Source: Andalucia godoyi And28 (Eukaryota > Protista > Jakobida). Taken from it: 34,623 nucleotides of DNA. Each line of letters opens with the position of its first letter. Position 1 is the stretch's first letter. Where the stretch lies: positions 203,084-237,706 of the forward strand of contig VRVR01000035.1 in assembly GCA_009859145.1 (NCBI GenBank), given 5' to 3'. Below, piece by piece: positions 4,830 through 34,425 of the stretch. The notes beneath the pieces were generated by a model. That model was not told the origin of the DNA. It saw only the letters and a program-made list of their open reading frames with translations, and made no database searches. The position numbers were made by a program, and so were the translations under genes.

Positions 4830-7154
4830 ATGATGAACGAAGCGGTTGTCATTCCTGAGATTTCAGACACACAGGAAGATCTCATCAGGTACGTCCATCG
4901 CGATTCCCTCTCCTCATGCCGCCGGGACATCGTGCAGCGCATCATTGGTGCCGCAGGGCCCTTCAAGGAAGGGGATCTGACAATTGGCGCAAGTGCTGCT
5001 GCTGACGACGACCAAACCCGCCGAAACGCTCAGATTCTCCTGTCCAGAACTCGAATTGACGATATGTTAGCGCTGCTGCGGGAATGCGTTCACCAAGATA
5101 ACGTCACGTTGGCAATTGAAAGCAGTCTTGAGAGAACCGCTGCGGACTCTGTAGCACGTTGGACAGTCGGAGAACTCGTGGCTTACCTTTTGGATGAGTC
5201 GACCGAAGGGTGCGCTATTGCAAGCCTGGCAAAGGGACTGCACAGCGATGTTATCGCTGCGTGTGTGAAGCTCATGTCCGATGATGATTTGCGAGCAGTA
5301 GGTGCAAAAGTATACAATCCGCTGCCCAGAAGCAAGATTGGAAGCAAGGGGTATTTTGCGGCGCGCGTGCAGCCAAACTCCGCGACGGATAATCCAGTGG
5401 ACATCATGTGGCAGGTGTTCAATGCATGGGCATTTGCGGTGGGCGATTTGATGTTGGGGACGAATCCGGTGTCGAGCAATCCAGCGCAGATTTGGAGTGT
5501 CGAGACCATGCTGCGGGACATTATCGATGCCTTTGATCTTCGCGATGTGCTCCCATGGACGGTGCTTGCGCATATTGATGATCAGAATACAGTGGAGAGT
5601 ATGGACAAGGGATCGACAAGACTGTTCTTCCAGAGCCTCGCCGGCACGGACGGTGCAAACTCCGTGTTTGGACTGTCCATGGAGAAAATGGCGTCATTTG
5701 CTCGGAAACGAAAGTCGGAAGAATATGCATTCTACTTTGAGACGGGCCAAGGGTCCGAATTCACGAATGGCCAAGCGTACGGCTGCGATATGGCCACGCT
5801 CGAATCCAGAAAGTTTGGGTTCATTCGCGCACTTCGAGGCTCGATGGCTGCGCAAAACCAAGGAATGGAGCCGTGGGTTGTTGTGAATGATGTTGCTGGG
5901 TTTATAGGACCTGAAGTGTTTTGCACGCCAGATCAGCTTGCCAGAGTGTTGCTTGAGGATATTGTCATGGGCAAGTTGCATGGACTGTGCATGGGCGTGG
6001 ATGTGTGCGCGACAATGCATATGAGCGTCTCACTGGCCGACATTCGCTGGGCAATCCGACAGATCGTTCCTGCGGGACCGTCTCATATGATGGCGCTTCC
6101 GACAAACATCGATCCGATGCTGAGCTACATGACAACCTCGTTCATTGACCATGTCATGGTCCGACACGAGTTTGGCACGCGGGTCAATGATCCTATGTGG
6201 AAGTTCTTTTGCGATGACCTGCAAGTGATCGACCAGCAAGGAAATCCGGTGCCCGGCAAATTTGGAAATCCAGCGTGGGTGTATGCGCTGTATCAGAAGA
6301 AGAAGCTCCGCTCGGATCGCAGTCTCGAAGACCTCGAAGCACAAGGTCGGAGGCAAATGATCGAGACCATGAACCGTGGAGTATACATGGCGGACGGCTA
6401 CGACGATTCTCCATTTGAAGGGCCTCGGCTGCACACTGATCTGCAGAAGCAGATCGAGTCGCAAGTTCAACGTTCGAAGCGTGTGCTGTACGCAGAATTC
6501 AGCGACGATTTCATCCAGTCCATACCGAACGCACGCGTGTTTTGCACGTCTTCGAAAGACCGAGCGGACTACGTTCTCCATGCAAAAACAGGCGAAGCGT
6601 TCGACGCGACTGAAACGCAGCGTCTCGAGGCTTTAAGCCAGGATCGGGTTGATGCACAGTTGCTTGGATTTGATGTGCAGATTGTCGTCTCGGACGGCCT
6701 GAATGCTTGTGCGCTAATGGACGACGAGAGGAAACATCTTTTCCCATTTCTTTCCAGGCTTCAGAAGCTGTTTGCTCACCACGACCTGCGAGTTGCTTCG
6801 GAAACCATTGTTGTTCGCAACGGACGTGTTCGAGCGGGGTATGAAATCGGCAGAATCCTCCTCGGAGAAAGAGCGGATGCTGGCGCTCAAGGTGGTGTTG
6901 AACGGAGTGGGTTCAGAAAAACTCTTGTGCATGCCATTGGAGAGCGCCCCGGAACGGAACATGACAGCTTCTCTGTGTACTTGACGACAGCATCTCCATC
7001 GTCGTGGGCGAGGACCGACAGCGAAGGGAAGGTGGATCATCACTGCACCCGGGTCGTGTCTGGCATTTCAGACACGTCTTTTGATCCTGTGTCTGCCGCA
7101 GAGGAAGTCTGCAGTATCATTTTGTCAAGTTTGACCACCAAGCACGTTGTATAA
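4830..7154 (+). CDS. eutBC: Ethanolamine ammonia-lyase, fused large (EutB) and small (EutC) subunits, adenosylcobalamin-dependent
   Basis: 774-aa intronless ORF. EutB motifs in order: PFKEGD, RVQPN (5364-5378), GDLMLGTNPV, LAHI, FQSLAGT, YFETGQGSE (about 5733), TLESRKFG, NDVAGFIGPEV, LEDIVMGKLHGL.MGVDVC, DPMLSYMTT. After a linker, EutC motifs: SKDRADYV, DVQIVVSDGL, VRNGRVRAGYEIG, IGERPG, SFSVYLT, VVSGIS. Confidence 0.93.
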   Translation: MMNEAVVIPEISDTQEDLIRYVHRDSLSSCRRDIVQRIIGAAGPFKEGDLTIGASAAADDDQTRRNAQILLSRTRIDDMLALLRECVHQDNVTLAIESSLERTAADSVARWTVGELVAYLLDESTEGCAIASLAKGLHSDVIAACVKLMSDDDLRAVGAKVYNPLPRSKIGSKGYFAARVQPNSATDNPVDIMWQVFNAWAFAVGDLMLGTNPVSSNPAQIWSVETMLRDIIDAFDLRDVLPWTVLAHIDDQNTVESMDKGSTRLFFQSLAGTDGANSVFGLSMEKMASFARKRKSEEYAFYFETGQGSEFTNGQAYGCDMATLESRKFGFIRALRGSMAAQNQGMEPWVVVNDVAGFIGPEVFCTPDQLARVLLEDIVMGKLHGLCMGVDVCATMHMSVSLADIRWAIRQIVPAGPSHMMALPTNIDPMLSYMTTSFIDHVMVRHEFGTRVNDPMWKFFCDDLQVIDQQGNPVPGKFGNPAWVYALYQKKKLRSDRSLEDLEAQGRRQMIETMNRGVYMADGYDDSPFEGPRLHTDLQKQIESQVQRSKRVLYAEFSDDFIQSIPNARVFCTSSKDRADYVLHAKTGEAFDATETQRLEALSQDRVDAQLLGFDVQIVVSDGLNACALMDDERKHLFPFLSRLQKLFAHHDLRVASETIVVRNGRVRAGYEIGRILLGERADAGAQGGVERSGFRKTLVHAIGERPGTEHDSFSVYLTTASPSSWARTDSEGKVDHHCTRVVSGISDTSFDPVSAAEEVCSIILSSLTTKHVV

Positions 7155-14116: not shown

Positions 14117-15148
14117 ATGCTGAGCTTGTCGATTGATTTGCCCTCGAGAGACAGACCAAGGCCGCGACTTGCACCGTTGCTTCTGAATAGTGGTTCTACT
14201 GCTACAGCCCTGCCGGTCATCCCTGTGAATCCAAGTAGTACCCATGATGCGTCTATTCCTTTTGCATCCGGCGCAACTTCGCTGAGCATATCAAATGATA
14301 ATTGCCTGATAGGCAGCAGTGTGAATAATAATAACAACAACAGCAGCAGCAGTCATACTAGTGGGTTGAGTAGCAGTAGCAGTTTTTACAGCCAAAGCCA
14401 AAGCCAAAGCCAAAGCCAAAGTCATAGCCATAGTCATAGCCATAGTCATAGCCATAGCCATAGCCATAGTCATAGTTGTAGCGGCACAAATGTAGTTCCG
14501 GTTGCTGGTCCGCGTGTCATCCCATTCGCTTTGAACAATACTCCGACGGTGGGGTCGTCGAACCGTGTGATTACGCCTTCCAGGAGCCCGGATTCGATGT
14601 ATCCCAAGTTTTCGCCGAAACTCATCTCGCCAAATAGGCAAGTCTCGACAATGTTAATGTATGCAGATGCGAAGGACCACTCTTGTTCTAGACCATACTG
14701 GGTTCTAGACGGAATTCTCGCTGGGATGCCGATCCCGTGCTGCACAGACGTGCTTGTTGGTCTTAGAAAAGCGGGTGTCCAACTTGTGGTTTCGCTTATT
14801 GAACCCAAGGAGGGAGTCTTCCCGGATGAATGGGTGACTGCAGCTGGCATCTCACAGCTGAAACTGCCGGTCCGTGACTTCACAGTGCCTTCTATGGACC
14901 AAGTACGCGTGTTTCTGGAAGCTTCCAAAAAGGTGGTTGCGCAAGGTTCGGCGGTGTTGGTGCATTGTTTCAGAGGCCTGGGAAGAACAGCCGTGTTCTT
15001 GGCTTGTTTCCTTGTTGTCGAGAGAAAGTACCACCCGGAGCGTGCAATCGAAAAAATCAAAACCGTGCAGCCAGATGCGTTTGCGACTTTGCAACAAGAG
15101 CTTTTCGTATGGGATGTTTGGAAGGAGTTTGTACCCGAAGATGAATAG
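14117..15148 (+). CDS. Dual-specificity protein phosphatase (DUSP23/CDC14/CDKN3-like) with a low-complexity N-terminal extension
   Basis: PTP signature VLVHCFRGLGRT (HCxxGxGR), general-acid loop LPVRDFTVPS, and YWVLDGILAGMPIP similar to the DUSP23 N-terminus. The N-terminal half has poly-N, poly-S and (SQ)5(SH)9. Confidence 0.9.
   Translation: MLSLSIDLPSRDRPRPRLAPLLLNSGSTATALPVIPVNPSSTHDASIPFASGATSLSISNDNCLIGSSVNNNNNNSSSSHTSGLSSSSSFYSQSQSQSQSQSHSHSHSHSHSHSHSHSHSCSGTNVVPVAGPRVIPFALNNTPTVGSSNRVITPSRSPDSMYPKFSPKLISPNRQVSTMLMYADAKDHSCSRPYWVLDGILAGMPIPCCTDVLVGLRKAGVQLVVSLIEPKEGVFPDEWVTAAGISQLKLPVRDFTVPSMDQVRVFLEASKKVVAQGSAVLVHCFRGLGRTAVFLACFLVVERKYHPERAIEKIKTVQPDAFATLQQELFVWDVWKEFVPEDE
14390..14476 (+). 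repeat. Coding hexanucleotide repeat (AGCCAA)5 then (AG[C/T]CAT)9, encoding (SQ)5(SH)9S
   Basis: Direct reading; synonymous AGC/AGT variation among the SH units. Confidence 0.95.
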
Positions 15149-15718: not shown

Positions 15719-17692
15719 TCAAACTTCAGAATACATTTGTCCGATCTGGACGGCGTAGTGCTTTCGCAACTTCGGCCGCACCAACTTGAGAGTGGGAGTA
15801 ATGAGGCCTTCGTCCACAGACCATGCTCGCGGTTCAAGATACATCTTCTTTGGGATCTCAAAGCCCAGCAGCTTTGCCCCCTTCGCAGCAGCCATAAGAT
15901 CATCGAAAACCGCACTCTGAACAGACGGATCGCGGCAAGCAGCGTCCACATCCATTCCAGGAAACTTGTCCTTGAACGTTTCCGGATTCGCCACAACGAT
16001 GCAAACAATGAACGCTTGCTCGGCTTCCGCATACACCCAAACGGACTGAACAAGACGAGATGTTGCGAGAGCGGCCTCCACTTTTTCAAGTGCAATGTAT
16101 TCCCCGAGCGCATTCTTCACAATATTTTTCTTGCGATCAATGATTGCAAACGTGCCCGAGTCCGGATAGTAACGACCGACGTCACCGGTATGGAACCATC
16201 CTTCGTTGTCCCAAGCCTCTGCAGTCAACTGAGGAGCCTTGTAGTACCCTTTGGTGACAGTCGGTCCGCGGATGCAAACTTCTCCAGAGGGCTCTGCATC
16301 CGTTGTCAAATACCCCATCTCAGGGATGTCAAGCAATTTGATTTCTGCAGATCGAATGGGCGGCCCAATGCGTCCAACGTGCAAATCCGTTGGATATGAG
16401 ATGGTGCCTCCGGCGGATGTTTCGGTCAGTCCATATCCGATCGACACCGGTGCAATAGCCACACTGATGAATTCCTGGACCTTGGCCCGCAGAGGAGCGC
16501 CGCCTGACAAGAACTGACGGATCCGGCCTCCGAACTTGGCTTTAATCTTGTTGAACAGCAGAGCATCGTACGGGGCGGTTGAGAAGCCTCGATGCATGGC
16601 ATTCTTCTTTGCACCATACAGCAAGTCAAAAACAGTCTTCTTCAAAGGGGACTTGTGCACCTCCTCGTTGATCTTGTCATAAATTCGGTCCAAAATTCGT
16701 GGGACTGCGGCGAACAATGTCGGGCGCAGCGCAGAGACGTCGTGCAAAACCAGCTTCGCATCTCCAGACCAAAATCCAATCGACGCGCCAAGCCCAAACA
16801 GTGCCATCTCTACGGCACGCTCCAGAATATGTGCAAGGGGCAAGTATGACAGATACACATCGTGCTCTCCCAGCGGAAACACGTGTCGAATCGCGCCGCC
16901 AATGATGGCCATGAAGTTTCTGGACGTGAACTGGCAGCCTTTCGGCTCCGATCCCGTGGTTCCCGAGGTGTACATCAGCACAACAAGGTCGTCTTCCGAA
17001 GGCACTGGATGCGGTGCAACAGGCTGTAAGGCACCCTGCGATTCGATTTCTGAGAGTGAGAACAAGCGGCAGTGCGACGGCACGTATCCATACTGTTCGG
17101 GATCGATCGGTTCATACTGGATCATCACTTTCAACACCGACGAGTGCTTTGCGACATTCACGACCTTTTGGAACATGTCCTTTGAAAAGCACAGTGCAGA
17201 AAGCTCCGCATGCTTGGCAATATAGACCGATGATTCTGGTCCCAGAGTATCGTACAGCGCACAAACAACCATTCCTTGCTGGTTTGCAGCTTCGGCAAAC
17301 AGAAGCCATTCCAGTCTGTTCTTCGAATAGATGCCAATGTGCGATCTCGGAGAAATCTGCGCATGGATCATTCCCGAGGCCACGTTCTTCACGCGAGCAT
17401 AAAACTGCTTGTACGAAATCCATTGGTACTCCTCTCCAACTCGAGTTCCGTAAAGCGGCTTGTCGCCATACTTGGCGCACGCATACTCGAAAAGATCGTA
17501 CACAGTCTTCACACCGGGAACGAACTCTTCCACCAGTCCATGCTCGGAAAGCGCATTCCGAAACACATTCCCCGGCATCCGAACAGCCTGCTTTGCCAGA
17601 TTCACTCCTTCCATCGACGGCTTTGCGGCTGCAAACGGCGCCAAAGGAAGTGTCGCAACTCCCAGCACCGTCGAGAGAATCGTCGATGCCAT
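15719..17692 (-). CDS. ACSL: Long-chain fatty acyl-CoA synthetase (ACSL/LACS family)
   Basis: AMP-binding motifs MYTSGTTGSEPKG, YLSYLPLAHILER, SGGAPL, GYGLTET, GWFHTGDVG, IIDRKKNIVK, TPTLKLVR. Intronless, 657 aa. Confidence 0.95.
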   Translation of the reverse strand: MASTILSTVLGVATLPLAPFAAAKPSMEGVNLAKQAVRMPGNVFRNALSEHGLVEEFVPGVKTVYDLFEYACAKYGDKPLYGTRVGEEYQWISYKQFYARVKNVASGMIHAQISPRSHIGIYSKNRLEWLLFAEAANQQGMVVCALYDTLGPESSVYIAKHAELSALCFSKDMFQKVVNVAKHSSVLKVMIQYEPIDPEQYGYVPSHCRLFSLSEIESQGALQPVAPHPVPSEDDLVVLMYTSGTTGSEPKGCQFTSRNFMAIIGGAIRHVFPLGEHDVYLSYLPLAHILERAVEMALFGLGASIGFWSGDAKLVLHDVSALRPTLFAAVPRILDRIYDKINEEVHKSPLKKTVFDLLYGAKKNAMHRGFSTAPYDALLFNKIKAKFGGRIRQFLSGGAPLRAKVQEFISVAIAPVSIGYGLTETSAGGTISYPTDLHVGRIGPPIRSAEIKLLDIPEMGYLTTDAEPSGEVCIRGPTVTKGYYKAPQLTAEAWDNEGWFHTGDVGRYYPDSGTFAIIDRKKNIVKNALGEYIALEKVEAALATSRLVQSVWVYAEAEQAFIVCIVVANPETFKDKFPGMDVDAACRDPSVQSAVFDDLMAAAKGAKLLGFEIPKKMYLEPRAWSVDEGLITPTLKLVRPKLRKHYAVQIGQMYSEV

Positions 17693-17706
17693 TTCAAAAA
17701 ATCAAA

Positions 17707-17728
17707 ACACACACACACACACACACAC
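17707..17728. repeat. (AC)11 microsatellite immediately 5' of the ACSL start codon
   Basis: Direct reading; about 15 nt from the ATG at 17692. Confidence 0.95.
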
Positions 17729-18270
17729 AAAAAGGAAAGAAAAAAACAACAACAACTGACAATACCAAAGAATATCACAAAACGTCAGAATCGATAGTGT
17801 AAACAAGAAAACAAATACAAAACACAAAATATAAAATACAACACAATTAAAACAATGATAATATAAAAAACTTTAAATAAACTTCAAATACTACCTTCAA
17901 ACGCATACCTCTTCAAACACTTGGGCTCGCATGCTTCGACTCGGACCAATTTTTTGAATGCCTTTGAGTAGGACATCTGTGGGGGGTGTCTTAGCATCAA
18001 TACAGAAACCTTTGAGAGAAGGCTTTTCCAGCTGCTGCTAGCCTGCGAGAAAATACCCTATCGTACCCAAATTCCTGTAGACGTTGCAAACCCTGTCCGT
18101 TTTGGACCATTCGTCCCACCTATGTCCCGAGTCCGCCTCTTTCTTCGAGGCTGTTTTCGGTGTTCACGTCCCTTTTCAAATTGTAAATCGCAAACTATTA
18201 AGAAAGAGAACTGCAGAAGGAGGGGGAAAACAGCCCAGAAATAGTCTCGCACAACAAAGCAAAAAGAGAA

Positions 18271-21200
18271 ATGGAATTGAATTTCCCATCTGAACCGCCT
18301 CGAGATGAGTTTGATGAGAATGATGATGCAGTGGATCCGACGATGTCGAATACTGCTGTCAATTCTACCAGTTCTGCCAATGCTGCCGCGAATGCACAAT
18401 CATCCAATCCTTTTCTTGTCTTGTCGAGCACAAACCAAGAGTATGGAGCAGGCTCGCCTTCCTCAAGATCAGACCCAAATGCCGCGTATCCAGCTGACGT
18501 CGAATCGGAGCCAAATACGAATGCGACTACTAATAATCACAGTAATAGTAGCAGTAACAGTAGCAGTAATAGTGCTGCTGCAGCAGCAGGTGGTGGTGGT
18601 GGTGGTGGTAGTAGTAGTTCCCCGTCCTCGAATCGCGTATCTTCCCGATGGAAGCGAATTCAGGAGCATGTTTCGATCCGCAATGAAAGCTTTGGGGGTT
18701 CTGAAGCTGGACTGCACAGTTTCATGGCAGTCGTGGATTCAACCAAAGAAAGCGCTGCGTTGCAAAAGTCAATGTCCAAGTTCATGGGGAAGCTGACTTC
18801 TTCTGCAGATCAAGACTTCTTCAACACCTTCCAGGAAATCGTGGCGCGCATCGTGAAGTATCCCAACGTGAAACGCATTCCATATTTTGCAGAGATCTGC
18901 CGAGTGTCCACGGAGAGGATGCTAAAAAGAGAGCCTCGCCCGTTGGAATGCAACGCAATTTGCGGATTTCTGGAGATGCTATTTGACACGAGATCCTTGC
19001 TGCTTGGAGAGTTGTTTAACCACGAGTATGCTCCGTGGTTGCTCAACATCGTCCTTTGTGGAATTCTTTCGTTTTCTGCAACAGCACCGGCTTCGCAATC
19101 GCCGGCAGTCTCGTCTCCGGCGGTAGTTTCGTCTCCGCTCTCGTCGTCCAGCCGGACATCGTCTGGAGTGTTTCCCAGGACTCCAACTGGGGGAAATGCA
19201 GCATCGTCCTCGGATACGCTGCTGCGGAGGCTCATGAATATGTTGCGATACTACACGGACAATGCAGATTCTGCTTGGCATGCACGATACATGGTTCCCG
19301 CACTTGTATTAGCAATCTGCAATTCAATGCACACGTCTGTTCGGTCTGAATTGCAGGCAATGCTAAACAAGATGGACTTGAGCTTGCAGATTCCTGCGAT
19401 GGCCGCATCGCTGGAAGTTGCGAGTGCAGAGGAGAAACGATTGGTGCTGAGGTACTTTCGAGTGTTGTTTGAAAAGCATGTGGACAACCCAAACTCCAAC
19501 GCCGTCTCGGTGATTCTCAACTTTACATCCCTGTTTGCGTTTCTTGCCAAGAGCGTCAACGTTGTATGGGCAGAGGTTGTCACATTTTTGGTGTCGTACA
19601 TTCGACCCGAGATGATCACTGAAAAGAATGCCGTGATGCAGTTGTCACATTTTCTCATGGATCTTGTGAAGAAGTTGCGATCAGATGCAGCTGTACTGGC
19701 TAACTCTACGCTGGTGATGAACGGCTCGGATGAAAATGCAGCAGCAGCATTGTCTCGTGTTCTGTCCTATCTCGCGATGGTGTGTCAAGTTCACCAGACT
19801 GCGTTTTGCGAAGAACTCAATCTGTTGATCGAAACTGAAGACATCCTTTCTACCGTGGTCCTCTACGAGATCCTGTGCTCTGAGACTGCGATTGCGCAGC
19901 GTGTAATTGAGAAGACATTTCCGTCTCTTTTGAAGAGACTTATGGCATGTTCCGTTTCCCTTGTTCCGTTGCAGTCCGAACTGCAGCAGATTATGCGGAC
20001 TTGTCAAATGCTGTTTGCCCCATTGTTCTACTCGACGCACATCAAACTCTTGCAATGCTCTTCGCGGACACTTCCACAGTTTGATGAATCTGTGAGGTGT
20101 GTTGAGTTTTATGGCAAGTGGTCCCAGGTGTATCGCGTTTTCCCATGCGACTTGATAGAGGCTGCTTTACGAATGAGCGATTCGGATGGAACGGACAGGT
20201 TTTTTGAGCTCTTTGTCCAGCATTTGTTTGTCGACGACGTAGCCTCGCAGTTGGACAATTCAAAGGATTTCGACGAGTACGTGGTGGAGGCAATTGCAGT
20301 CATGTCGGCATATTTGAAGGATAAGATGCTGAAGAAGGAAGAAATCCCAGTCAAGAAGAGAAAGCCGCTCTGCACGACTCTCAGGAGACTGTACGAGCTG
20401 GGGCGTCCAAAGCACAGGCCACAGTGGATACCGATTGTCGCATCACTCTCTGTGAAGGATGATGCGCTGCAGGGATACACAGAAGATCTCCGAGACAGCT
20501 CGTATTTGCTCGTTGCAGCTGCAGCGCCGATCATGGCTCGAGATTACGTGGAGCCTTTCATGTCGTATGCATTTGAGCGGCTGGATAAGCCCCATTTGGC
20601 TGCGGCGTCGGCCTCCATTCTCTGCTTATGTGGCTTCTATTTTCCTGCGAAAGTCAGAGAGTATATTTTATCGCAGATGTATTCTGCAGACCAGAAAACT
20701 CGACTTGTGGCTCTGGAGCGCCTCCAGATCCTTTGGACGTATCGCTTCAAAATGATGGAAACCTATCTTCGCGCTTGCCGGGAAGGTCCATCGAAGGCCG
20801 ATGCTGACGAAGATTCCATCGTCCTCGCGCCGCTTCCTGAGGACACGTTGCTCCAGTTCGCATATCCAGTGACGCAGCTTGGTGTCATGCGCGAGTCGGA
20901 TTCGAAGGTGCTCTCCTCTGTGCTTCTCCAAAAGTTCGATTATGTCCCTGCCTCTGCGTTTGTCAAGGGAAACGTTTCGCTTGAAAGGATAGTGCAGTTG
21001 GGGTCCACACCAGCGTCGCCGGGAGGCGCAGCGTCACCGGGAAGTCCTGCAGGCTCGACATCTGCGACATCGAGTGGAGACCAGAACCTGCTTGCAGCCG
21101 CAGTAGAACCTGAAGAGGAGGTGAAGCTTGCGCCGTCCGCGAATTCTGCGCGTGGGACTGGCTCGGCTTCGTCCGGCCTTCCGGGTCTTCCTGCGCTACG

Positions 21201-23766
21201 ATCGGCGTCTTTTCTCCGTGTGGTGACAAAGATGAAAAGTTCAGGCCAGAAGTTGCATGCAAGAGCAGTCGACCGCCGAGCGATTGCTTCCTTGGAGCCT
21301 CGCACACAGATTCCTCAAATATTCTGTGTGCTCACGTACGCCGTCTTTGACCTGCTGGAGGATGAAAGTGTAGCAGTCTCGATTGCGGCGCATGCGTACC
21401 TGTCGGCGGGTTTGGCAGAGGACCCCAGTTTGCTGCTGTCTCATGTGTTCAACAAGCTGGCAGACATCGACAATGTACCCGGCGACCAAGTTCTTGGGTT
21501 GTTACACCGTCTCCATTCTGGATTGCTAAGACTCACGACCGTTCCTCCAAACTGTGCGTACGCAGTTTGCAACATTCTTGTGTCATTAATGAACCACATA
21601 TCTTCCAATCGTTCCATGCTGGAGTTGCTTGCACCGTCGGTATTTTCTCTGTTGGGCGATATTACAGCCTCAGTTGACGGCCTTCCGGTGTCCCAGATGA
21701 TTGAGCAATCCCAGAAGTTTGTTCTGACGGGCGCTCTTTCGGTTGCAGACAACTCCGTCGGAGCGAATGCGACCACTGCCACCCCAGCCGGCGATAGTTT
21801 TACGCAGATCGCCACAGCGGAGAGAATTTTCTTTGCGCACCGAGCATTACGATCAACCATGTCTGGCATTGCAGACGCCGATGTTGCATCTGCTTTTGAT
21901 CGATCGGTTTCCACAACATTTTCGACGGTTGGAGCGTGTTTGGAGGACATTTGTGTGATGTGGATGATGTACTGCAGGAGGTTGATTGTCAGTTTGCCTG
22001 CAGAGTTTGTCAATATTGGCCCGTACGTCGAGTCCATGGCGTCCTTTTTGCAGCCGGATACTGCATCAGTGGTTAGTTTACGGCTTGCGATTGCGTTTAC
22101 TTCCGATGTTATTGCAAAGTACCCGAATGCCGTCACCGAACTGGAGCTGTTCAAGGTGATGGTACCGGCATTTGTGCGTCTCTACGAACACTTTGTCGTG
22201 GACGCGATCATCTCCTCCTCGATTCGTTGGTTGTTTTCTGCATGCGTGAGTGCATTTGGGGAAGATGTGTTCTTTGGTCAAGCCATCAGCGCGCTCTCAG
22301 ATACCTTTTTTACTCCTCGAGAGACCGATGGGTTGCTGAACCTTGAGCTGTCTCCGAAGACTTTGTATGACTTGTTCGTTGCTCTCCCCGTTGGGCCAGC
22401 AGATGCGGCACTTCCGCTACCCCTTGCAGGTGTCGACATGTTGGATGTCAAATCCGTGCTTGTGTACCAAACGTCCTTGCTGAGTGCGCAGTATTCGTTA
22501 GATCTGTTCATCAACTTTCTTTGTCGATACATTTCTGCATCGCTGGACGAATCCTCTCTGACCGGGAACAAGAGATCGCGACTGCAGATTTCCTCGGTGT
22601 TGCGTACTCTGGTTCCATACGCTCTTCGTACATATGGCCACATTCAGAGTGACGTCATTGGAGCGGTCATACAACAGTGCATCAGCGGAACGGCAGTTGA
22701 ACTCGCCACATGCGAGAACTTGTGCAAACTGTGCTTCGCTCTCGCCACCGAGTTTGTGGATGTTTTTAGCCAAATCGCGCCGTCCGTCCAGCTTCTGCTT
22801 GACCAGTACATCACCATTGCAGCCACGCGGGATGCCCAGGACGTTGCATGTTTGACGGATTTCCTTCTGAAAGGATTGCCGAACGTTTCTGATCCGGCGG
22901 TGCTGCAAGGAATTGCTTCCGCGATTTCCGGGTCGCTCGTTCGACTGTTGGCCAACAGCAATTCGTCAACTGCTGCCTTTGCCTGGAATTGCTTCCCACA
23001 GCTGTTGTCTTCTATTGGGCAAGCGATGAAGCAAAAAACGGTCCTGTGCGATCCGTTTGCTTCTGCCGCTGGAGATGCGCTGATTTTCACCTTGCTGCTT
23101 TCCCAAATTCCAGTCAAGGTTCGCCGGGAATTGTGGATGCTGACTGCTTTCTCGCTTCGAGGAGCAAAATCAAGCATTTTTTCGCGTTCTGAAACGCTGG
23201 CTCGCGTATTTCCGCTGCAGTCACCTGCTGAGGTTCGGCAGTCATTTTTGCAAGTCCTGATTCCGGTGGCGCTTCGACTCGGCGAAATGGGTTGTGTTTC
23301 CGAAGCAGTTTCGTTTCAGCAGTGGTCCATGTTCTGCATGTTGGCAGCGTATCCTCTGGCACAACGGGACCCTATTTGGTCAAGCATATTGCCCGAAAGC
23401 CTTTGTCTGTTGAAATGCGTTCTCATTTTCTGTCCGCAGTGCGTTCGAGAATATGCGACCCAGATCTTTTCTTCAGTGCGAAACATCCTCTACGACCTCC
23501 AGACCAATCCCTCTCTGAAGGTCCTGTTTCCCGCCTTCCTGGAGTTTCTCGAAGCGTGCATTTACTCGAGGTCTCATTTGTTCTTGGTGCTACAGCCGTT
23601 CATCTCGCAGATTCTGGCGAACGACGCGACTGGGATACCCGTTCGGACGGACAAAGTCAAAGACACCCTTGATCGCATCCGATTCCTTCTCCGTTCGTGG
23701 TCGTCCAAAACCGACTGGAACGTCCGTCTATCGGATGAGTATCGAATTCTCGTTTCGTCATCCTGA
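18271..23766 (+). CDS. UNC80: Large HEAT/ARM-repeat protein, UNC80-like C-terminal half
   Basis: 1831-aa intronless, all-helical Leu-rich ORF. Three collinear blocks resemble human UNC80 as I recall it: ASASILCLC..FPAKVREYILSQMY....RLVALERLQILWTYRFKM...QFAYPVTQLG; PQIFCVLTYAVFDLLEDESVAVSIAAHAYL...EDPSLLLSHVFNKL; FLEFLEACIYSRSHLFLVLQPFI. The symbol is tentative. Confidence 0.65.
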   Translation: MELNFPSEPPRDEFDENDDAVDPTMSNTAVNSTSSANAAANAQSSNPFLVLSSTNQEYGAGSPSSRSDPNAAYPADVESEPNTNATTNNHSNSSSNSSSNSAAAAAGGGGGGGSSSSPSSNRVSSRWKRIQEHVSIRNESFGGSEAGLHSFMAVVDSTKESAALQKSMSKFMGKLTSSADQDFFNTFQEIVARIVKYPNVKRIPYFAEICRVSTERMLKREPRPLECNAICGFLEMLFDTRSLLLGELFNHEYAPWLLNIVLCGILSFSATAPASQSPAVSSPAVVSSPLSSSSRTSSGVFPRTPTGGNAASSSDTLLRRLMNMLRYYTDNADSAWHARYMVPALVLAICNSMHTSVRSELQAMLNKMDLSLQIPAMAASLEVASAEEKRLVLRYFRVLFEKHVDNPNSNAVSVILNFTSLFAFLAKSVNVVWAEVVTFLVSYIRPEMITEKNAVMQLSHFLMDLVKKLRSDAAVLANSTLVMNGSDENAAAALSRVLSYLAMVCQVHQTAFCEELNLLIETEDILSTVVLYEILCSETAIAQRVIEKTFPSLLKRLMACSVSLVPLQSELQQIMRTCQMLFAPLFYSTHIKLLQCSSRTLPQFDESVRCVEFYGKWSQVYRVFPCDLIEAALRMSDSDGTDRFFELFVQHLFVDDVASQLDNSKDFDEYVVEAIAVMSAYLKDKMLKKEEIPVKKRKPLCTTLRRLYELGRPKHRPQWIPIVASLSVKDDALQGYTEDLRDSSYLLVAAAAPIMARDYVEPFMSYAFERLDKPHLAAASASILCLCGFYFPAKVREYILSQMYSADQKTRLVALERLQILWTYRFKMMETYLRACREGPSKADADEDSIVLAPLPEDTLLQFAYPVTQLGVMRESDSKVLSSVLLQKFDYVPASAFVKGNVSLERIVQLGSTPASPGGAASPGSPAGSTSATSSGDQNLLAAAVEPEEEVKLAPSANSARGTGSASSGLPGLPALRSASFLRVVTKMKSSGQKLHARAVDRRAIASLEPRTQIPQIFCVLTYAVFDLLEDESVAVSIAAHAYLSAGLAEDPSLLLSHVFNKLADIDNVPGDQVLGLLHRLHSGLLRLTTVPPNCAYAVCNILVSLMNHISSNRSMLELLAPSVFSLLGDITASVDGLPVSQMIEQSQKFVLTGALSVADNSVGANATTATPAGDSFTQIATAERIFFAHRALRSTMSGIADADVASAFDRSVSTTFSTVGACLEDICVMWMMYCRRLIVSLPAEFVNIGPYVESMASFLQPDTASVVSLRLAIAFTSDVIAKYPNAVTELELFKVMVPAFVRLYEHFVVDAIISSSIRWLFSACVSAFGEDVFFGQAISALSDTFFTPRETDGLLNLELSPKTLYDLFVALPVGPADAALPLPLAGVDMLDVKSVLVYQTSLLSAQYSLDLFINFLCRYISASLDESSLTGNKRSRLQISSVLRTLVPYALRTYGHIQSDVIGAVIQQCISGTAVELATCENLCKLCFALATEFVDVFSQIAPSVQLLLDQYITIAATRDAQDVACLTDFLLKGLPNVSDPAVLQGIASAISGSLVRLLANSNSSTAAFAWNCFPQLLSSIGQAMKQKTVLCDPFASAAGDALIFTLLLSQIPVKVRRELWMLTAFSLRGAKSSIFSRSETLARVFPLQSPAEVRQSFLQVLIPVALRLGEMGCVSEAVSFQQWSMFCMLAAYPLAQRDPIWSSILPESLCLLKCVLIFCPQCVREYATQIFSSVRNILYDLQTNPSLKVLFPAFLEFLEACIYSRSHLFLVLQPFISQILANDATGIPVRTDKVKDTLDRIRFLLRSWSSKTDWNVRLSDEYRILVSSS

Positions 23767-23975: not shown

Positions 23976-26900
23976 TCAATGCAAGTGTTCCATCTCTTCT
24001 ACTCGCTTCAGCACCTCATCAACAGTCATTTTTGATCCAAAGCACTTGTGCACAATTTCGGAAACCTTTTCTTTCGGCAAGTCAAGAAGCGTCTCCACAA
24101 GGTCTCCGTCAACGAAACCGGTTTGGGGAAGCTGCTTATGCATATGATGGTGGATGGACCGGAAGGTTTCATGGTCGAAGTGACCGATATGCGTGGCGGC
24201 CGAACGAATGGCATTCTGCAACTTTTCAAAAAAGCTGAACCATTCTGGACTCAATAAGAAAATGTTGAAAATTCCGCCCTGTTGCGATCCAGCAAGGATG
24301 GAGGCCTTCACGTTCCTTGTCACAGAATCATCCGCTTTCGCACTCGATTTTGACTCAACAGGCAGCGTGGATGACAGCTGCATGACCAACGAACCTTTCG
24401 TCATGCAGTTCACAAGCTCCCCAACGTGATAGTTGCCAGCAGGATTCAAACGCTTTCTATCCTCCTCAAGCGCCACGTCCACATTTCTCTTTGACAACAC
24501 CAGGTTAGCAAAGTGATCGCCGACAATGAATGTTTCATCATCCACAATGTCTCCGGACACCGTGTACACAGCTGCATAATGCCGGGACACTTCATCAAAC
24601 TTGTTCTCAACAGATCGATAGGCATACAGCGAGAAGCTCTTAATCATATCTCCCACGAGCACAAAATCACCGCGAGTACTGATGAGCGTGATGAAAACTT
24701 GGGTCTGCGACTGACATTCGATCTCCAGTTCGCGATTGACAGCAGACAATGCAGACGCAGATGCACTGCCGACAATTTCCTTCTTTGGAGCCCACTTCCA
24801 CAAAACAATTTTCGAGTTGACAGACGTCAGAAGTTTTCCATTGAAGGAACTTGCACAGTAGCAACAGCCCTTCACTTCTTTTTCAGCAGCCAAGATCAAT
24901 GCATTCTGAGAATCCACATAGAAGACCAAAATGCGGCCACGAGTCGGAACTTCTTCTGAGGGCAGCATGAATCCCGTTCCAACAACGTAGTACGTCTTCT
25001 GATCGTCGTCCTCTCCAGCAGCATTGGCTCCCGCAGAGGCATCCGATGACGCTGAATTAGAACCAGCAGCAGATCCTCCGCTCGCGGAGAACGTGCATGA
25101 AATGATCGAGCACGCCACTTCCCTCGGTTCCAGTTTGAAAACTGACAACAGCTCCATGGACGATTCTTCAAACATCCGCAAGTGCACTTCGACGCCTTCC
25201 GCGCCTCGATCATCAACATACGATCTTTCCGTGGCCACTAGCAGACTCCGCGACGCTTCTTGGTACGCAATCGCACGAGCCTGCTCCTTCAACGGAACGG
25301 TTTTCACGTGCAACTTCTGGATTTCATCCATGTTTCCAAGAATAAGAGATCCAGCTGCTTCAGCGATGGCCAAGACATCCAGTGATGGCAGTGCGCAAAC
25401 AGAAACAACAGGGCGCGAATTAACGTGTGAAAACGACAGTTTGTGATTGCGCATGTGAATGACTGCAGGCCTGTCAGAACACGCGAACACATGCCAAGCG
25501 CCATGTGAGTAGAACGGAACAAACTTCACGTCGTGCGATCCCAGAGAAACCTTTCTTCTGTCTGACAACTCGCATGTGCTAGGATCAAACTTGTACGAGA
25601 AGACAGAGCCATCACCCAGCGATGCTAAAAGATAATCTGCTCGAGCATCGAAGGTATCGGGCTGGAGAGAAGCAAGAATAACGGAATGGGACACCAGCCC
25701 TTCTTCCAGTCGTTCTGTCAGTACCACCGAGAGAGAAGGAAGGCGCAGAATACACACAGCCGCGCCCGTTGTCTGTCCAGATCCCGACTGGTCCCACAAA
25801 CTCAGTACGGCAAATTTGCTCGTGCTGTTCGTCAACGGATGAAGGGACACCGCTGCAATATCCTTTGTCATCTTTGTTTTTCCGATCTCCCTTAGAGATC
25901 CGCCGGCATCCACTTGGAACAGGAAAAGTTCGCCACCTGTCAAAGCGACCAGAACAAGATCACCGTAAGAGTCGGCATGCATGATGGTCGAAGGCGCATT
26001 CCACGAAGAGGCCAGTGCAAAGCCTTTGGTGTCCACCAAGCGTACTTGTTTGCTGGTAACCTGAACGCAGTGTGATCTCCCAAACGGTGCTTCCCGATCG
26101 GTTCCGTACAACGGAGGCTGCTGCGCCGGCGATGCGGCTGCAAGCGGCGTTCCAACATTTCCGCAATGACGAGTGTCCACATCCAAGTCAAAGCCAGCCA
26201 CGGTGCACTCCGCAAGAGTGTCATTCTCATTGATCTGCAAAACACGCGTCTGGCGGACAAACTGCAATACTAGGTAACGACCGCCGGCAAGTGCCCACAC
26301 GCCTTTCAGACCCGGAACATCGAGCATTGCCTGTTCCGCGATACCAATACCCGCGCGCACAATCCGCAGTGAGGAGTCCTTGCCGATTCCAGAGCACGTT
26401 ACCAAATGCCCGTGACCCTGATGCTCGGGATCCACGAGACACATGCTCGTAATCGGACCGATGTTCGCAAACGAATCAATGACGGTCAGGAACGGACCAG
26501 TCTCCGTAGCACTTGACGCAGCGGCACCAGAAATTGAGGGATGGGAAAGCTTGACGATTTGAGAGTCGCCCGCCGCAGACCCGACAAATACGACGCCGGA
26601 GTCAAGATACGCGAGGCACTGGGCCGCAGAGGTCTCGCCATACTTCTCTACAACCAAATCCGTAACATTCGACGCACCAGAAGCACGAAGAGTGAGAACG
26701 TACAACACGCCTCTGTCATCTGCCATGAGAAACCGTGCATTGCCAGCTTCCTGCTTGTTCGAGAATGACCCAGCTGTAGTGCTGTTGGAAACTGGAGCAA
26801 AGCAACGCATGAGAGACCCGGGTCGACCGATGGTTGTTGGCCGGATTCCCGTGTGAAACATCACAGATTGTTCTCCAACCACCACCACCCCACCAAACGG

Positions 26901-27718
26901 AGCCGGAACTGGAAACATCAAATGTGCACGAGGATCGACATTTTGCTGAACAAAGGATGCATCATGCAGCACTCTGTCCTTGACAATGACTTCGTACGTC
27001 TTGATATGTCTTCCGTTTCGTCCGTCATCATACAGCACCGCGAGCGTCGGGACAGCGCACATTCCCTTTGACGGTTCGTAAGTATACAAGAAGCACATGT
27101 CGACCACCATGTATTCTTCAACCCGAACGTTAAACGTTTCGCCGACGGTCCCAGTTCGCTTGTCAATAGCCAAAATCCGCACAAACCCTTGGTAAATCTG
27201 CAACGCAACCATTCTGCAATACGGGTCAACTGCGCAGAGATACCGATCATCATTTTCGTGTCCCTCGGAGTCTCCCGAATTTCCATACGCAAGGGTTTTG
27301 AACGCAATTCCGTTTGCCAATTTTGCCGAAGAAGAGCCAGCGCCATTATCCACCGTGATGATTGACCACCGAAGCTTATCTGTGAGTATGAAGAGACACT
27401 CCGCTTCCACAGCTTGCGCATTTAATGATTGCACTGGGAGTTTCAAGGACTGCAAAGCTTCCACACGGCCGTTCAGCGTAAGCTCCGTCACTGCAACAAG
27501 CCCATTCTCGCCCACGTCATAAAACTCCAACCGATTTGATTTCCTAACACAGCATTAGAATCTCTCCAATTTCAAAGCCCCGGAGGGACACACACCATGC
27601 AAAGAACAAAATGGAAAACATACGCGATAACAAGATTTCTCTTTTTAGGCCCAAGAAACGAGCCGGCCAAGCAGTGGGTTGCCGCAGTCGACTTTTGAGC
27701 CGACACAACATATGCCAT
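23976..27718 (-). CDS. DDB1: DNA damage-binding protein 1 (CUL4 adaptor), complement(join(23976..27543,27624..27718)), 1220 aa
   Basis: Reconstructed N-terminus MAYVVSAQKSTAATHCLAGSFLG...NLVIAKSNRLEFY matches the DDB1 start. Internal motifs: LYLDSGVVFVGSxxGDSQ, NIGPI, HLVTCSG.GKD.SLRIVR.GIGI, CSDRPAVI, DEIQKLHVKTVPL, VGDMIKSF, GFVDGDLVE. Exon lengths total 3663 nt, in frame. Confidence 0.95.
27544..27623 (-). other. Spliceosomal intron of DDB1 (80 nt, phase 2)
   Basis: On the minus strand: GTATGT donor, TTCTAAT branch motif about 10 nt before the TAG acceptor. Removal joins VIA to KSNRLEFY. Confidence 0.92.
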
Positions 27719-30831: not shown

Positions 30832-32811
30832 ATGAGGGTCGGATATCCGGTCAGGTTGGCTGTGTGTAGGTGCATCATCGTCTTGTTGTTGCTCGTGGTG
30901 ATGGCGGCGCGTTTTGGGGCGGGTGATCTCATCGTGGAGACGACAACTGGGGTGTTTCAAGGGGGACTGGAACCGGATGTGGATACGGTGGCCACGTTCA
31001 GAGGGATTCCGTTTGCGAAGCCTCCTGTGGGTTCTTTGCGGTGGAAGTCTCCGCAGCCGTTCGTGTCGGACGATCCCACTGTGCAGCAAGCAACGCAGTT
31101 CAAAGGCCCGTGTTCCCAGTATTCAACGGAGACGAGCTCGTTGATCGGACAAGAGGACTGTCTGTATCTGAACATCTGGGCTCCCATTTCGGTCGTGCCG
31201 AACACCAGTGCTGCTAGTGCTGCTACTGCCGCCGCAAACGACAATCGCGGAAATGAAAAGTTGGTTCCGGTGATGTTTTGGATCACGGGTGGTGGATTCG
31301 TCCGAGCAGATCCAACCTCTCCTGACTACTCGGGAAAAAATTTTGTGGCGGAGCGCGGGTCGGTGATCTTCGTTTCGTTTAACTACAGGGTAGCAGCATA
31401 CGGATTCTTGACTTTGCCGGAGCTCTCGGCAGAGTCTCGCAGTGGATCGTCAGGGATGTACGGGTTTGAGGACCAAAGGGCGGCGTTGCAGTGGGTTAGG
31501 GCGAACATCCGCCAGTTTGGCGGTGATCCAAACAGAATAACAATGATCGGACAGTCCGCAGGAGCCATTTCAACGTGTGCTCATATTGCAAGTCCTCTTT
31601 CTACCGGGCTGTTCCACTCTGCGATACTGATGTCTGGTGGATGTGATGTCATCCAGGAAACACAAGCACAGAGATTCGAAACGGGATTTTTGTTTGCACA
31701 GTATGCGAATTGCGCGGCGACGGATCTGAGCTGCTTGCGATCGCTATCAGTGTCCGACATATTCACGGTTTCGGCCAAAATGAATGCGTCCATCATTTTT
31801 TCTCCAACGCAGTTTGGGCCTGGAATTGACGGCGTCAATCTGATGGATTACAATTCGCTGTCACTTGGGCAGCGCATCGCACAGGGCAGTTTCAAACCCG
31901 TCCCCGTACTTATCGGAAGCACAAAGGACGAGATGAGCCTGTTTGTTGCGACGAATCCCGTTCTGCTTGGCATCAACGAGCAGACGTATCCGTTCTACGT
32001 GGCCAAGTTCACCAATAACATTCCAGAGTTGGTGGATATGTACGTCCCGTACACGAAAGTCGCATCCAATCCTCGAGACGCGCTGGTTATCATGTCTTCC
32101 GAATCTGTGTTCATATGTTCTTCTCGTCGCTTTGCGAGGAGCGTCGCTGCATTGAACATTCCCGTTTATTCATACCAGTGGTCCCATGCACCACAGAATG
32201 GAAGTCTGACTGCAGAAACGTGGACAGGTGCGTATCATTTCTCGGACGTGCCTTTCGTCTTCGGAACCGTGCCGGATTCGGGGGGCGTTGTCTATTCTCT
32301 TTCTCCTGCAGAATTACTGCTCAGTCGACGAATGCGTCTGTACTGGTTGAATTTTGTAGAGTCGCAAGGGGCTTCTCCTAATGCAGCTTTCGATCCGTTG
32401 AAGGAAGAAACGCTAGCAGATAGTCTCAATCAACAGCCGTGGCCCTTGTACAGGCTGTCCACGGACGAGTACATGGTGTTCGATACGCCTGCTTACATTT
32501 TCAATGTCACTGCTGGACTGCACCTGCCCCGCTGTGACACATGGGACAGAGTTCTCCTCGGCTCCTCCTCGTACTCTTTCCTGAATCCACTGACTCCTGG
32601 CGTGCAAACCACAACGGGCTCCAATTCGAACGACGCTTCGGATTCCAACCAAGTTCGAGCATCGCTCGCACTTGCCATCATCTCAATCATTTTGAGTTTC
32701 GGCTTACTCGTGGCATGGATTGTGTTCACTTTGCGGAATTCATTGAAATCCAGGCGCCACGGATCCATTTCTGAAGCCTACTTGAGTGCTCCTCTTAGGC
32801 AACGAGTTTAA
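30832..32811 (+). CDS. Type-B carboxylesterase with signal peptide and C-terminal transmembrane helix
   Basis: FRGIPFAKPPVGSLRWKSPQ, EDCLYLNIW, WITGGGF (oxyanion hole), NYRV..YGFL, FGGDPNRITMIGQSAG (catalytic Ser), GSTKDE (Glu), GAYHFSDVPFVFG (His), and TM LALAIISIILSFGLLVAWIVFTL. Confidence 0.93.
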   Translation: MRVGYPVRLAVCRCIIVLLLLVVMAARFGAGDLIVETTTGVFQGGLEPDVDTVATFRGIPFAKPPVGSLRWKSPQPFVSDDPTVQQATQFKGPCSQYSTETSSLIGQEDCLYLNIWAPISVVPNTSAASAATAAANDNRGNEKLVPVMFWITGGGFVRADPTSPDYSGKNFVAERGSVIFVSFNYRVAAYGFLTLPELSAESRSGSSGMYGFEDQRAALQWVRANIRQFGGDPNRITMIGQSAGAISTCAHIASPLSTGLFHSAILMSGGCDVIQETQAQRFETGFLFAQYANCAATDLSCLRSLSVSDIFTVSAKMNASIIFSPTQFGPGIDGVNLMDYNSLSLGQRIAQGSFKPVPVLIGSTKDEMSLFVATNPVLLGINEQTYPFYVAKFTNNIPELVDMYVPYTKVASNPRDALVIMSSESVFICSSRRFARSVAALNIPVYSYQWSHAPQNGSLTAETWTGAYHFSDVPFVFGTVPDSGGVVYSLSPAELLLSRRMRLYWLNFVESQGASPNAAFDPLKEETLADSLNQQPWPLYRLSTDEYMVFDTPAYIFNVTAGLHLPRCDTWDRVLLGSSSYSFLNPLTPGVQTTTGSNSNDASDSNQVRASLALAIISIILSFGLLVAWIVFTLRNSLKSRRHGSISEAYLSAPLRQRV

Positions 32812-33012: not shown

Positions 33013-34425
33013 TCATTCGACAGCAGCGGGAGAAAAGCTTGCGGCGCCCGACTTGGCTAGTGCCAAGGAAGAGGACAATCTGTGCGCAAAATACATAAAT
33101 GGTAGAGCCAAGACTTGAAACGAGCACATAATGATTCCGAAGCACAAGAACAAAGAGCCCGAATCGAGAGAATACGCTGCAACGATCGCCTGAATCACGG
33201 TTTGCAAGGTGAGCGACAAAATGGAAACTGTACAGAATGTTTCTCCGTAATGCTTGGACTCGGTATACGTGGCAATCAATGCCGAGTCAAGTGCATTGCA
33301 ATGCTCCAAAAACCCCACATACAGTACGTACAAGCATATCGACAGGGTTAGAGAATCCACAAAGCTTTCTCCAACAAGAATGCTTCCGCCAAGCAACGGA
33401 AAAATCAATAGATCAAAACCGGATTTGACACCGTAGGTCGCATCAAACAACTTTGCCCCTCCGGATGCCAGCGCACCGAGGGATCGTGCACCCGCTGAAG
33501 CCCAGCCATTGAGCCGTTCATCCGGGCTAATCTCATAGAATAAATTGGTAATATAGTTGTATACAAGATTGTGGACAGCCATAATCACCACGAAAAACAA
33601 AGCACAATACCGCAGTGTTGCATGATTGCAAATGAACAGAAGTGTTTCCCACGATATCCGAAACCACAAACCAATCGATTCCGACACCATTGCACCAAAG
33701 GATTTCTTCGCCTTTCCGCTTTCGCTCCCCCTTTCCATCGTTGATTCTTCAGATACTGATGCAGTCTCTCCAGCTGGATCGTTGTGTGGACCGATTGTTG
33801 ACGGTTCGTCGCTGCCGAGCAAAGTAGTTTCCAAAGCCGAATCTGCAGGTGCGGGAACCACCGGGTCGACAGCAGGCAGGACAAACAGCGCAAACAGCGC
33901 AGAAAGGAAAATGGACACTGCTGAAATGTAGAAGAGGACAGAAAGACTCGCATTTCCGTAGGACAAGAGCATCTGGCCTAGAAGAGCGGCAAGAACGTGC
34001 GCAATGAGCATTGCAGAGTGTGTCAGCGACGACATTTTGCTGAATTCTTCTTGAGGAACATGGGTGTAAATGTATCCAAAGAAGACGGATTCGCAGGCTT
34101 CTCCAATTCCGTAGAATACTTGCATGATTTGCATCGGAGCTACTTGTCCGTGAGGTGCATACAAGAGCAATAAGCGAACGACGACCCTGGCAAGAGACCC
34201 CAGTACAAGGGCCCCCTTGTATCGCAAGACCCGCTCTGACAGCGGAGCCAAGATGATCAAGCTGCACAGTGCACTGTACGTGTACACTGGATAGACCTTA
34301 TTGTTCAGATCGTCTTCGGACAACCCAACATCATCGATCAGGTAGTTTGTGAGAAACGGCTCAGACGGCTTGAAATGAACCAAGAATTCATATGCTGTAG
34401 CTGCATAATCGAACCGGATTTTCAT
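33013..34425 (-). CDS. SLC19: Reduced folate carrier / thiamine transporter family (SLC19, MFS)
   Basis: YEFLVHFKPSEPFLTNYL...VYPVYTYSAL, MQIMQVFYGIGEACESVFFGYIY, about 12 hydrophobic segments and a large central loop. The KPSEPFL motif is typical of SLC19. Confidence 0.88.
   Translation of the reverse strand: MKIRFDYAATAYEFLVHFKPSEPFLTNYLIDDVGLSEDDLNNKVYPVYTYSALCSLIILAPLSERVLRYKGALVLGSLARVVVRLLLLYAPHGQVAPMQIMQVFYGIGEACESVFFGYIYTHVPQEEFSKMSSLTHSAMLIAHVLAALLGQMLLSYGNASLSVLFYISAVSIFLSALFALFVLPAVDPVVPAPADSALETTLLGSDEPSTIGPHNDPAGETASVSEESTMERGSESGKAKKSFGAMVSESIGLWFRISWETLLFICNHATLRYCALFFVVIMAVHNLVYNYITNLFYEISPDERLNGWASAGARSLGALASGGAKLFDATYGVKSGFDLLIFPLLGGSILVGESFVDSLTLSICLYVLYVGFLEHCNALDSALIATYTESKHYGETFCTVSILSLTLQTVIQAIVAAYSLDSGSLFLCFGIIMCSFQVLALPFMYFAHRLSSSLALAKSGAASFSPAAVE

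Follow-up and report, generated by a model that had tools for sequence, protein, structure and literature searches.

The 34,623-nucleotide stretch of Andalucia godoyi DNA analysed here, which we call the window, carries on its plus strand, at 18271..23766, the gene ANDGO_00023, which very probably is an intronless gene for a soluble, all-alpha HEAT/ARM solenoid of ~1,831 amino acids (aa) and encodes an UNC80 homologue that has diverged strongly. For a long time UNC80 and UNC79 were regarded as components, confined to animals, of the neuronal sodium-leak channel. The jakobids, to which the small heterotrophic free-living flagellate A. godoyi belongs, are among the deepest-branching groups of free-living eukaryotes, and its presence in a jakobid moves the origin of the UNC80 scaffold closer to the last eukaryotic common ancestor.

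A first-pass annotation of this DNA had proposed that a unicellular eukaryote encodes an UNC80-like giant helical-repeat protein and that the UNC80 scaffold predates animals. The first proposal is confirmed by the Pfam, PDB and exhaustive searches described below and the second is borne out by the same sequence tests, both in agreement with Senatore et al. 2025 (J Gen Physiol 157:e202413636, PMC12412391; preprint April 2025). The point about a deep origin was already made in that study with ANDGO_00023 itself, and the window adds no new conclusion to it. What is new here is the conserved block at aa 1230-1378, the S-x-W motif and, as a practical by-product, a probable correction of the ANDGO_00023 start codon; otherwise the novelty is nil.

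UNC80 Homology of the ANDGO_00023 Protein

When the whole protein was scanned against Pfam, the UNC80 central region (PF19424) was matched at aa 740-827 with 31.1 bits against a gathering cut-off of 22.7 (E=1.3e-7), the match spanning profile positions 496-585 of 706, that is, the last part of the model only. The C-terminal family UNC80_C (PF20262) was absent from the report of the full-length scan; with aa 985-1400 scanned alone, it was matched at aa 1010-1142 with 28.3 bits against a gathering cut-off of 22.1 (E=5.3e-7), over profile positions 18-151 of 1079. The later parts of the UNC80_C model are supported only indirectly, via the homologues P0057 and P0064.

A phmmer search with the single sequence against 177,635 PDB sequences found human UNC80 (7wji_A, 7sx3_E and 7w7g_B) at E=1e-7, with aa 746-1139 of ANDGO_00023 aligned to residues 1574-1969 of the human protein, and a profile made from the Andalucia and Stygiella sequences reached human UNC80 at E=4e-20. 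In neither search was any PDB protein other than UNC80 significant. Two of the blocks in which the first-pass annotation had recognised UNC80 lie inside the significant phmmer alignment, and each coincides with a Pfam family above its cut-off: nt 20596-20880 (~aa 776-870) with PF19424 and nt 21310-21600 (~aa 1014-1110) with PF20262. The human UNC80 strings that had been cited in its support are also present in this alignment, but with a small slip, the PDB sequence reading FPACICAAVLPIVHLMED.

When aa 640-1831 were searched exhaustively with phmmer, 1.84 billion representatives yielded 8 matches at E<=0.001, including the protein itself. For six of the seven non-self matches the best Pfam match was the UNC80 central region or UNC80_C, in four cases with a score exceeding the curated cut-off, and the remaining one was an 87-aa fragment without a Pfam match. 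One of the matches, from the crinoid Anneissia japonica, is annotated 'protein unc-80 homolog'. With hhalign, the two-jakobid profile was aligned to this crinoid UNC80 at a probability of 97.4%, through the central region alone. Four collinear stretches were found between the jakobid profile and the crinoid protein, at Andalucia aa ~738-828, 1015-1143, 1230-1308 and 1700-1782, and three between the profile and the UNC80_C protein of Linnemannia hyalina (P0064). In a word-indexed homologue search with the whole protein, self was alone among the matches listed; when a nine-sequence alignment was used, self and one fungal UNC80_C protein were among the matches listed. Identity is low, about 21-25%, and ~500 of the 1,831 residues are detectably alignable to animal UNC80.

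These comparisons provide solid sequence evidence that ANDGO_00023 is homologous to UNC80. An identity as UNC79 was rejected, as none of the UNC79 chains of 7sx3, 7wji and 7w7g was matched at E<=10 and no UNC79 Pfam match was obtained.

Conserved Regions along the Protein

Block 1 (aa 738-843; 20482..20799, plus strand) corresponds to the end of the Pfam UNC80 central region and to about residues 1564-1669 of human UNC80, and is matched to residues 794-888 of the crinoid UNC80 with an iE of 1e-15. It is followed by a low-complexity and probably disordered linker (aa 844-995; 20800..21255, plus strand), which has low-entropy windows at aa 907-983 and in which residues 200-335 of the structural model are without secondary structure, at a pLDDT of about 25-33. 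Block 2 (aa 996-1162; 21256..21756, plus strand) corresponds to the start of Pfam UNC80_C and to about residues 1840-1969 of human UNC80; it is matched to the Stygiella homologue at E=7.6e-17, and also in the crinoid and fungal homologues.

The next block, 3a (aa 1230-1378; 21958..22404, plus strand), falls at UNC80_C profile positions about 330-490 and is absent from the first-pass annotation. P0057 matches aa 1230-1369 and itself matches UNC80_C positions 340-457. The jakobid profile matches residues 1381-1523 of the fungal P0064 (iE 4e-4), a stretch that overlaps this protein's own UNC80_C match at 1372-1530, and residues 1412-1503 of the crinoid UNC80 are matched with an iE of 0.013.

The C-terminal block (aa 1700-1782; 23368..23616, plus strand) contains the FLEFLEACIYSRSHLFLVLQPFI motif (aa 1754-1780), which had previously been put forward as a third stretch of UNC80 likeness (nt 23530-23610). 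This proposal holds in so far as the stretch is collinear and has UNC80 as its top PDB match, but it is not significant alone (E about 1). A three-sequence C-terminal profile, made from Andalucia, Stygiella and an environmental fragment, with Rigifila left out after visible misalignment, had as its top PDB match residues 2795-2863 of human UNC80 (…FLDFIVRTRIPIFVLLRPFI…), at only E=1. For the last 232 aa, the best BLASTP match within the crinoid UNC80 is the same motif (E=0.11), and the C-terminal block as a whole is matched, collinearly, to crinoid residues 2080-2155 (iE 0.33). Aa 1751-1828 share 36-38% identity with the environmental fragment P0056. Used alone as a PDB query, the C-terminal 688 aa gave no UNC80 match, and the greater part of the final 450 aa gave nothing significant against animal UNC80.

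At the other end of the protein, a helical region (aa 147-641; 18709..20193, plus strand) is homologous to the N-terminal half of the jakobid UNC80, with phmmer stretches against Stygiella at aa 147-267 (2e-12) and aa 478-641 (8e-7). No similarity of the N-terminal 740 aa to animal UNC80 was detected in the PDB or Pfam: aa 125-739 had no Pfam match at E<=10, aa 101-739 had no UNC80 match in the PDB, and a four-sequence N-terminal profile found nothing there. The observation made earlier, that the N-terminal ~750 aa have no recognisable match, is therefore right for animal UNC80, but the Stygiella protein does provide a match, in its N-terminal half. Because the N-terminus of the Stygiella homologue is likewise without a Pfam match, the absent N-terminal match looks like lineage divergence, and not like a counter-argument to UNC80 membership.

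Comparison with Jakobid, Animal and Fungal UNC80

Senatore et al., whose subject is the pre-animal origin of the channel complex, applied UNC80 HMMs to 185 eukaryotic proteomes (PMC12412391). Their Data S12 prints the exact ANDGO_00023.mRNA.1 protein under the label DiscobaEP00762Andaluciagodoyi_P006007_ANDGO_00023, and in their UNC80 tree A. godoyi is sister to Stygiella incarcerata with support 96.8/96.6/1; A. godoyi is not named in the main text (PMC12412391). Since both Data S12 and the tree contain ANDGO_00023, an UNC80 homologue in A. godoyi was already known. With this study in print, the statement of the first-pass annotation that work on UNC80 and UNC79 is almost confined to metazoan neurons is out of date.

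The Stygiella UNC80 homologue (EukProt EP01028_P009240, Data S12, PMC12412391) has 1,847 aa, compared with 1,831 aa in Andalucia, and the two align in five collinear stretches, Andalucia aa 147-1809 with Stygiella 119-1824 (phmmer E=1.8e-49). Both proteins match PF19424 and PF20262, and both have an S-x-W-x2-I-x3-V motif near the N-terminus and a FLEFLE motif near the C-terminus; however, they are only about 21-25% identical, the UNC80_C score is 57.7 bits for Stygiella and 28.3 bits for Andalucia, and of the two species Stygiella alone has a reported UNC79 partner (PMC12412391).

Human and mouse UNC80 (7sx3_E, 7wji_A, 7w7g_B) is the cytoplasmic subunit of the NALCN-FAM155A-UNC79-UNC80 channelosome and an all-helical HEAT/ARM solenoid, as the Andalucia protein is predicted to be from a low-confidence AlphaFold2 (AF2) model. 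The human protein has 3,258 aa, whereas the Andalucia protein, with 1,831 aa, is little over half as long; the N-terminal half is unalignable between them and the Andalucia protein has no match to the Pfam N-terminal family. Fungal Unc80, represented by CNAG_01613 of Cryptococcus neoformans and KI688_012237 of Linnemannia hyalina (P0064), is like the Andalucia protein non-metazoan and detected mainly via UNC80_C and central-region motifs, and the N-terminal W motif is found in both CNAG_01613 and the Andalucia protein. At about 3,000 aa, however, the fungal proteins are far longer and their UNC80_C scores are much higher; moreover, Cryptococcus Unc80 is backed by experiment (PMC11526942).

Predicted Structure

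An AF2 model of aa 640-1831, made with a 10-sequence alignment, consists of helices throughout, about 50 in number, apart from an unstructured loop at aa ~840-975; its confidence is low (pLDDT 49, pTM 0.35). When this low-confidence model was compared with the PDB by Foldseek, UNC80 (7w7g_B) came first at E=7.7e-9, with TM-scores of only 0.25/0.19; importin-beta was the runner-up (E=4.6e-6), followed by many generic solenoids. The check with AlphaFold and Foldseek, which had been suggested in the first-pass annotation, thus favours UNC80 by rank, but at a low pLDDT, with low TM-scores and with generic solenoids close behind. The Foldseek score includes amino-acid similarity, so the test is not independent of the sequence; the ranking from the predicted model agrees with the UNC80 sequence result and lends it weak support.

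Proposed Function

Mammalian UNC80 and UNC79 are HEAT/ARM solenoids of wave-like shape, paired head-to-tail via head, joint and tail contacts, the joint contact of UNC80 being made by its middle heterodimerisation domain (Kang & Chen 2022, PMC9098444). Two peptides of the NALCN DII-III linker, UNIM-B and UNIM-C, are bound by the middle and UCD2 domains of UNC80, which promotes delivery of the channel to the surface and frees it from auto-inhibition (PMC9098444). The Cryptococcus complex is a physical one, in which Unc79, Unc80, Cch1 and Mid1 are recovered together by co-purification (Boucher et al. 2024, PMC11526942). The predicted Stygiella UNC79/UNC80 dimer is reported to be without the supercoiling of the human dimer (PMC12412391), a point against the analogy drawn below.

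By homology, ANDGO_00023 most likely encodes a cytoplasmic scaffold equivalent to animal UNC80. As in the human and Cryptococcus complexes, it would lie as an elongated scaffold on the cytoplasmic face of the membrane, pair antiparallel with an UNC79-like partner and clamp peptides from the cytoplasmic linkers of a NALCN/Cch1-type cation channel with four domains, and this clamping may in turn lead to surface delivery and opening of the channel. Judged by their position, the best-conserved segments (aa 738-1162; human UNC80 1564-1969) are plausibly part of the middle heterodimerisation domain. No reliable alignment with the Andalucia protein extends over residues 2295-2481 of UNC80, which form its UNIM-B binding groove (PMC9098444).

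Alternative Interpretations

A solenoid of this kind might instead belong to another giant HEAT/ARM family (importin/karyopherin, CAND1, huntingtin, Furry, MON2 or DOP1), its likeness to UNC80 being due to chance or composition. Such an origin would accommodate the generic solenoids (importin-beta, Kap95, CAND1, FANCD2/I and huntingtin) that Foldseek matched at E 1e-6 to 1e-4, and also the fact that only about a quarter of the protein is alignable to animal UNC80. However, no other Pfam family was significant, the best being Xpo1 at E=0.038, which is under its cut-off; no other PDB sequence was significant; among the seven non-self matches of the exhaustive search, six with UNC80 as their best Pfam family, none significantly matched another family; and collinearity over four blocks is not expected from chance similarity between repeats. 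A better match to Furry/Tao3, DOP1, MON2 or huntingtin, the outcome that the first-pass annotation had named as speaking against UNC80, was not seen in any sequence search. We regard membership of another family as highly improbable, and on these sequence comparisons it appears to be effectively refuted.

A different question is whether a true UNC80 homologue could work here without UNC79 and/or a NALCN/Cch1-type channel, as an orphan scaffold serving another client, perhaps in an ancestral role that predates the channelosome. The published HMM search found UNC79 in Stygiella and not in A. godoyi, the UNC79 set (Data S14 and the UNC79 tree) including Stygiella and no A. godoyi protein (PMC12412391), and within the window there is no candidate for an A. 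godoyi UNC79. Outside animals the co-occurrence of the subunits is patchy, with Cch1/Mid1 present without UNC79/UNC80 in many fungi (PMC12412391). In addition, in the part of the published channel tree examined here, the A. godoyi four-domain channels ANDGO_07082 and ANDGO_00428 are grouped with other Discoba channels, and not next to the Stygiella/Gefionella branch that adjoins NALCN (PMC12412391). All of this would suit an orphan scaffold; on the other hand, UNC79 has diverged to a point where even the fungal protein escapes BLAST, and the authors themselves caution that divergent homologues were possibly missed by their HMMs (PMC12412391). Both subunits are present in the sister jakobid Stygiella, and the best-conserved region of the Andalucia protein would lie, by position, in the part of UNC80 that makes the joint contact with UNC79, which would fit a partner that has been kept. 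Taking both sides into consideration, we find an orphan scaffold unlikely. We give equally little weight to a history in which A. godoyi kept UNC80 and lost UNC79, perhaps together with the NALCN/Cch1-proximal channel found in Stygiella. If UNC79 was indeed lost, UNC80 would act alone or with another client, and the original job of the scaffold would not be tied to a NALCN-type channelosome.

Gene Model and Start Codon

The open reading frame (ORF) list and its translation give ANDGO_00023 as a single exon encoding 1,831 aa plus the stop, with no internal stop across the 1,831 codons. The nearest 5' in-frame stop is at 18199, and 18271 is the first ATG thereafter. The publicly annotated CDS (18724..23766, plus strand) encodes 1,680 aa and begins at Met152 of the ORF; P0001, a protein of 1,680 aa with the N-terminus MAVVDSTKE, is 100% identical to its product.

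A motif, SRWKRIQEHV (aa 125-134; 18643..18672, plus strand), lies 5' of the annotated start codon. As seen in the N-terminal alignment, the pattern S-x-[RH]-W-x2-[IV]-[RQ]-x2-V is common to the UNC80 homologues of Andalucia, Stygiella, Rigifila and Cryptococcus, and its S, W and V are unchanged in all four. Codons 1-151 are free of stops, which from composition has a P of about 4e-4, although their GC3 is lower, at 0.38, compared with 0.57 for the remainder of the gene. The conserved S-x-W motif 5' of Met152, together with the stop-free codons 1-151, indicates that the 1,680-aa model is probably truncated; the published model would then lack the N-terminus of the protein, and its start codon probably needs correction.

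In the ANDGO_00023 product Leu, Ser and Ala are abundant, and low-complexity stretches are found at aa 17-130, 264-314 and 907-983. The maximum Kyte-Doolittle mean over windows of 19 residues is 1.69. As none of these is strongly hydrophobic, the protein looks soluble, with no obvious transmembrane segment.

Genomic Neighbourhood

The convergent neighbour of ANDGO_00023 is the DDB1 gene (23979-27530, minus strand), which is 100% identical to EukProt ANDGO_00026 and carries an intron of spliceosomal size. This identity marks the window as nuclear DNA of A. godoyi (Jakobida, Discoba). A bacterial or contaminant origin of the DNA was rejected in view of the eukaryotic neighbour genes and of this intron. 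The compact and nearly intron-free layout of the window agrees with the published A. godoyi genome of ~20 Mb (PMC7050145).

Start of the UNC80 homologue gene

The public model of ANDGO_00023, the gene for the A. godoyi UNC80 homologue, begins at Met152 (numbering of the 1,831-aa open reading frame), and the region 5' of this start (window 18271-18723, + strand) consists of 151 open codons. Within this stretch we found the motif SRWKRIQEHV (aa 125-134), which is conserved in the UNC80 homologues of Stygiella, Rigifila and Cryptococcus. GC3 across 18271-18723 is atypically low, at 0.38. Because the 151 upstream codons are open and carry this conserved motif, the start codon as annotated probably lies too far downstream. 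Further 5', an A-rich intergenic region (17693-17900) containing a (CA)n microsatellite at approximately 17708-17729 separates the UNC80 gene from a divergent acyl-CoA-synthetase-like gene (15719-17692, - strand).

Environmental or transcriptome relatives of the jakobid UNC80 homologues

Three short environmental or transcriptome fragments matched UNC80 homologues of jakobids in their C-terminal portions, with 32-38% identity. P0056, from a 915-nt contig of a JGI metagenome, is nearer to Andalucia, and P0062 (L001, Logan ERR11260150) and P0057 (ENA) are nearer to Stygiella. These sequence matches hint that further uncultured or unsampled jakobid-like lineages carry a UNC80 homologue gene.

Other genes in the window

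DDB1 (ANDGO_00026, 1,220 aa; 23979-27718, - strand) is among the few spliced genes of this intron-poor window, with one short 5' intron of approximately 74 nt between exon 1 (27718-27623) and exon 2 (27548-23979). A cholinesterase-type carboxylesterase gene (30832-32811, + strand; COesterase, E=1.4e-98) adjoins one for a reduced-folate-carrier family transporter (33013-34425, - strand; E=3.6e-62), both of which are ordinary for eukaryotes.

The 343-aa open reading frame at 14117-15148 (+ strand) carries a dual-specificity/PTP-like phosphatase domain; in Pfam, the DSP-PTPase families that match it best are 'Swiss Army Knife' and the one associated with polymorphic toxins, and not the classical eukaryotic DSPc. 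Ethanolamine ammonia-lyase is a B12-dependent, typically bacterial enzyme; in this eukaryotic nuclear genome its large subunit, EutB (E=1.8e-118), is fused to its small subunit, EutC (E=7e-24), in one polypeptide of 774 aa, encoded by a single open reading frame at 4830-7154 (+ strand).
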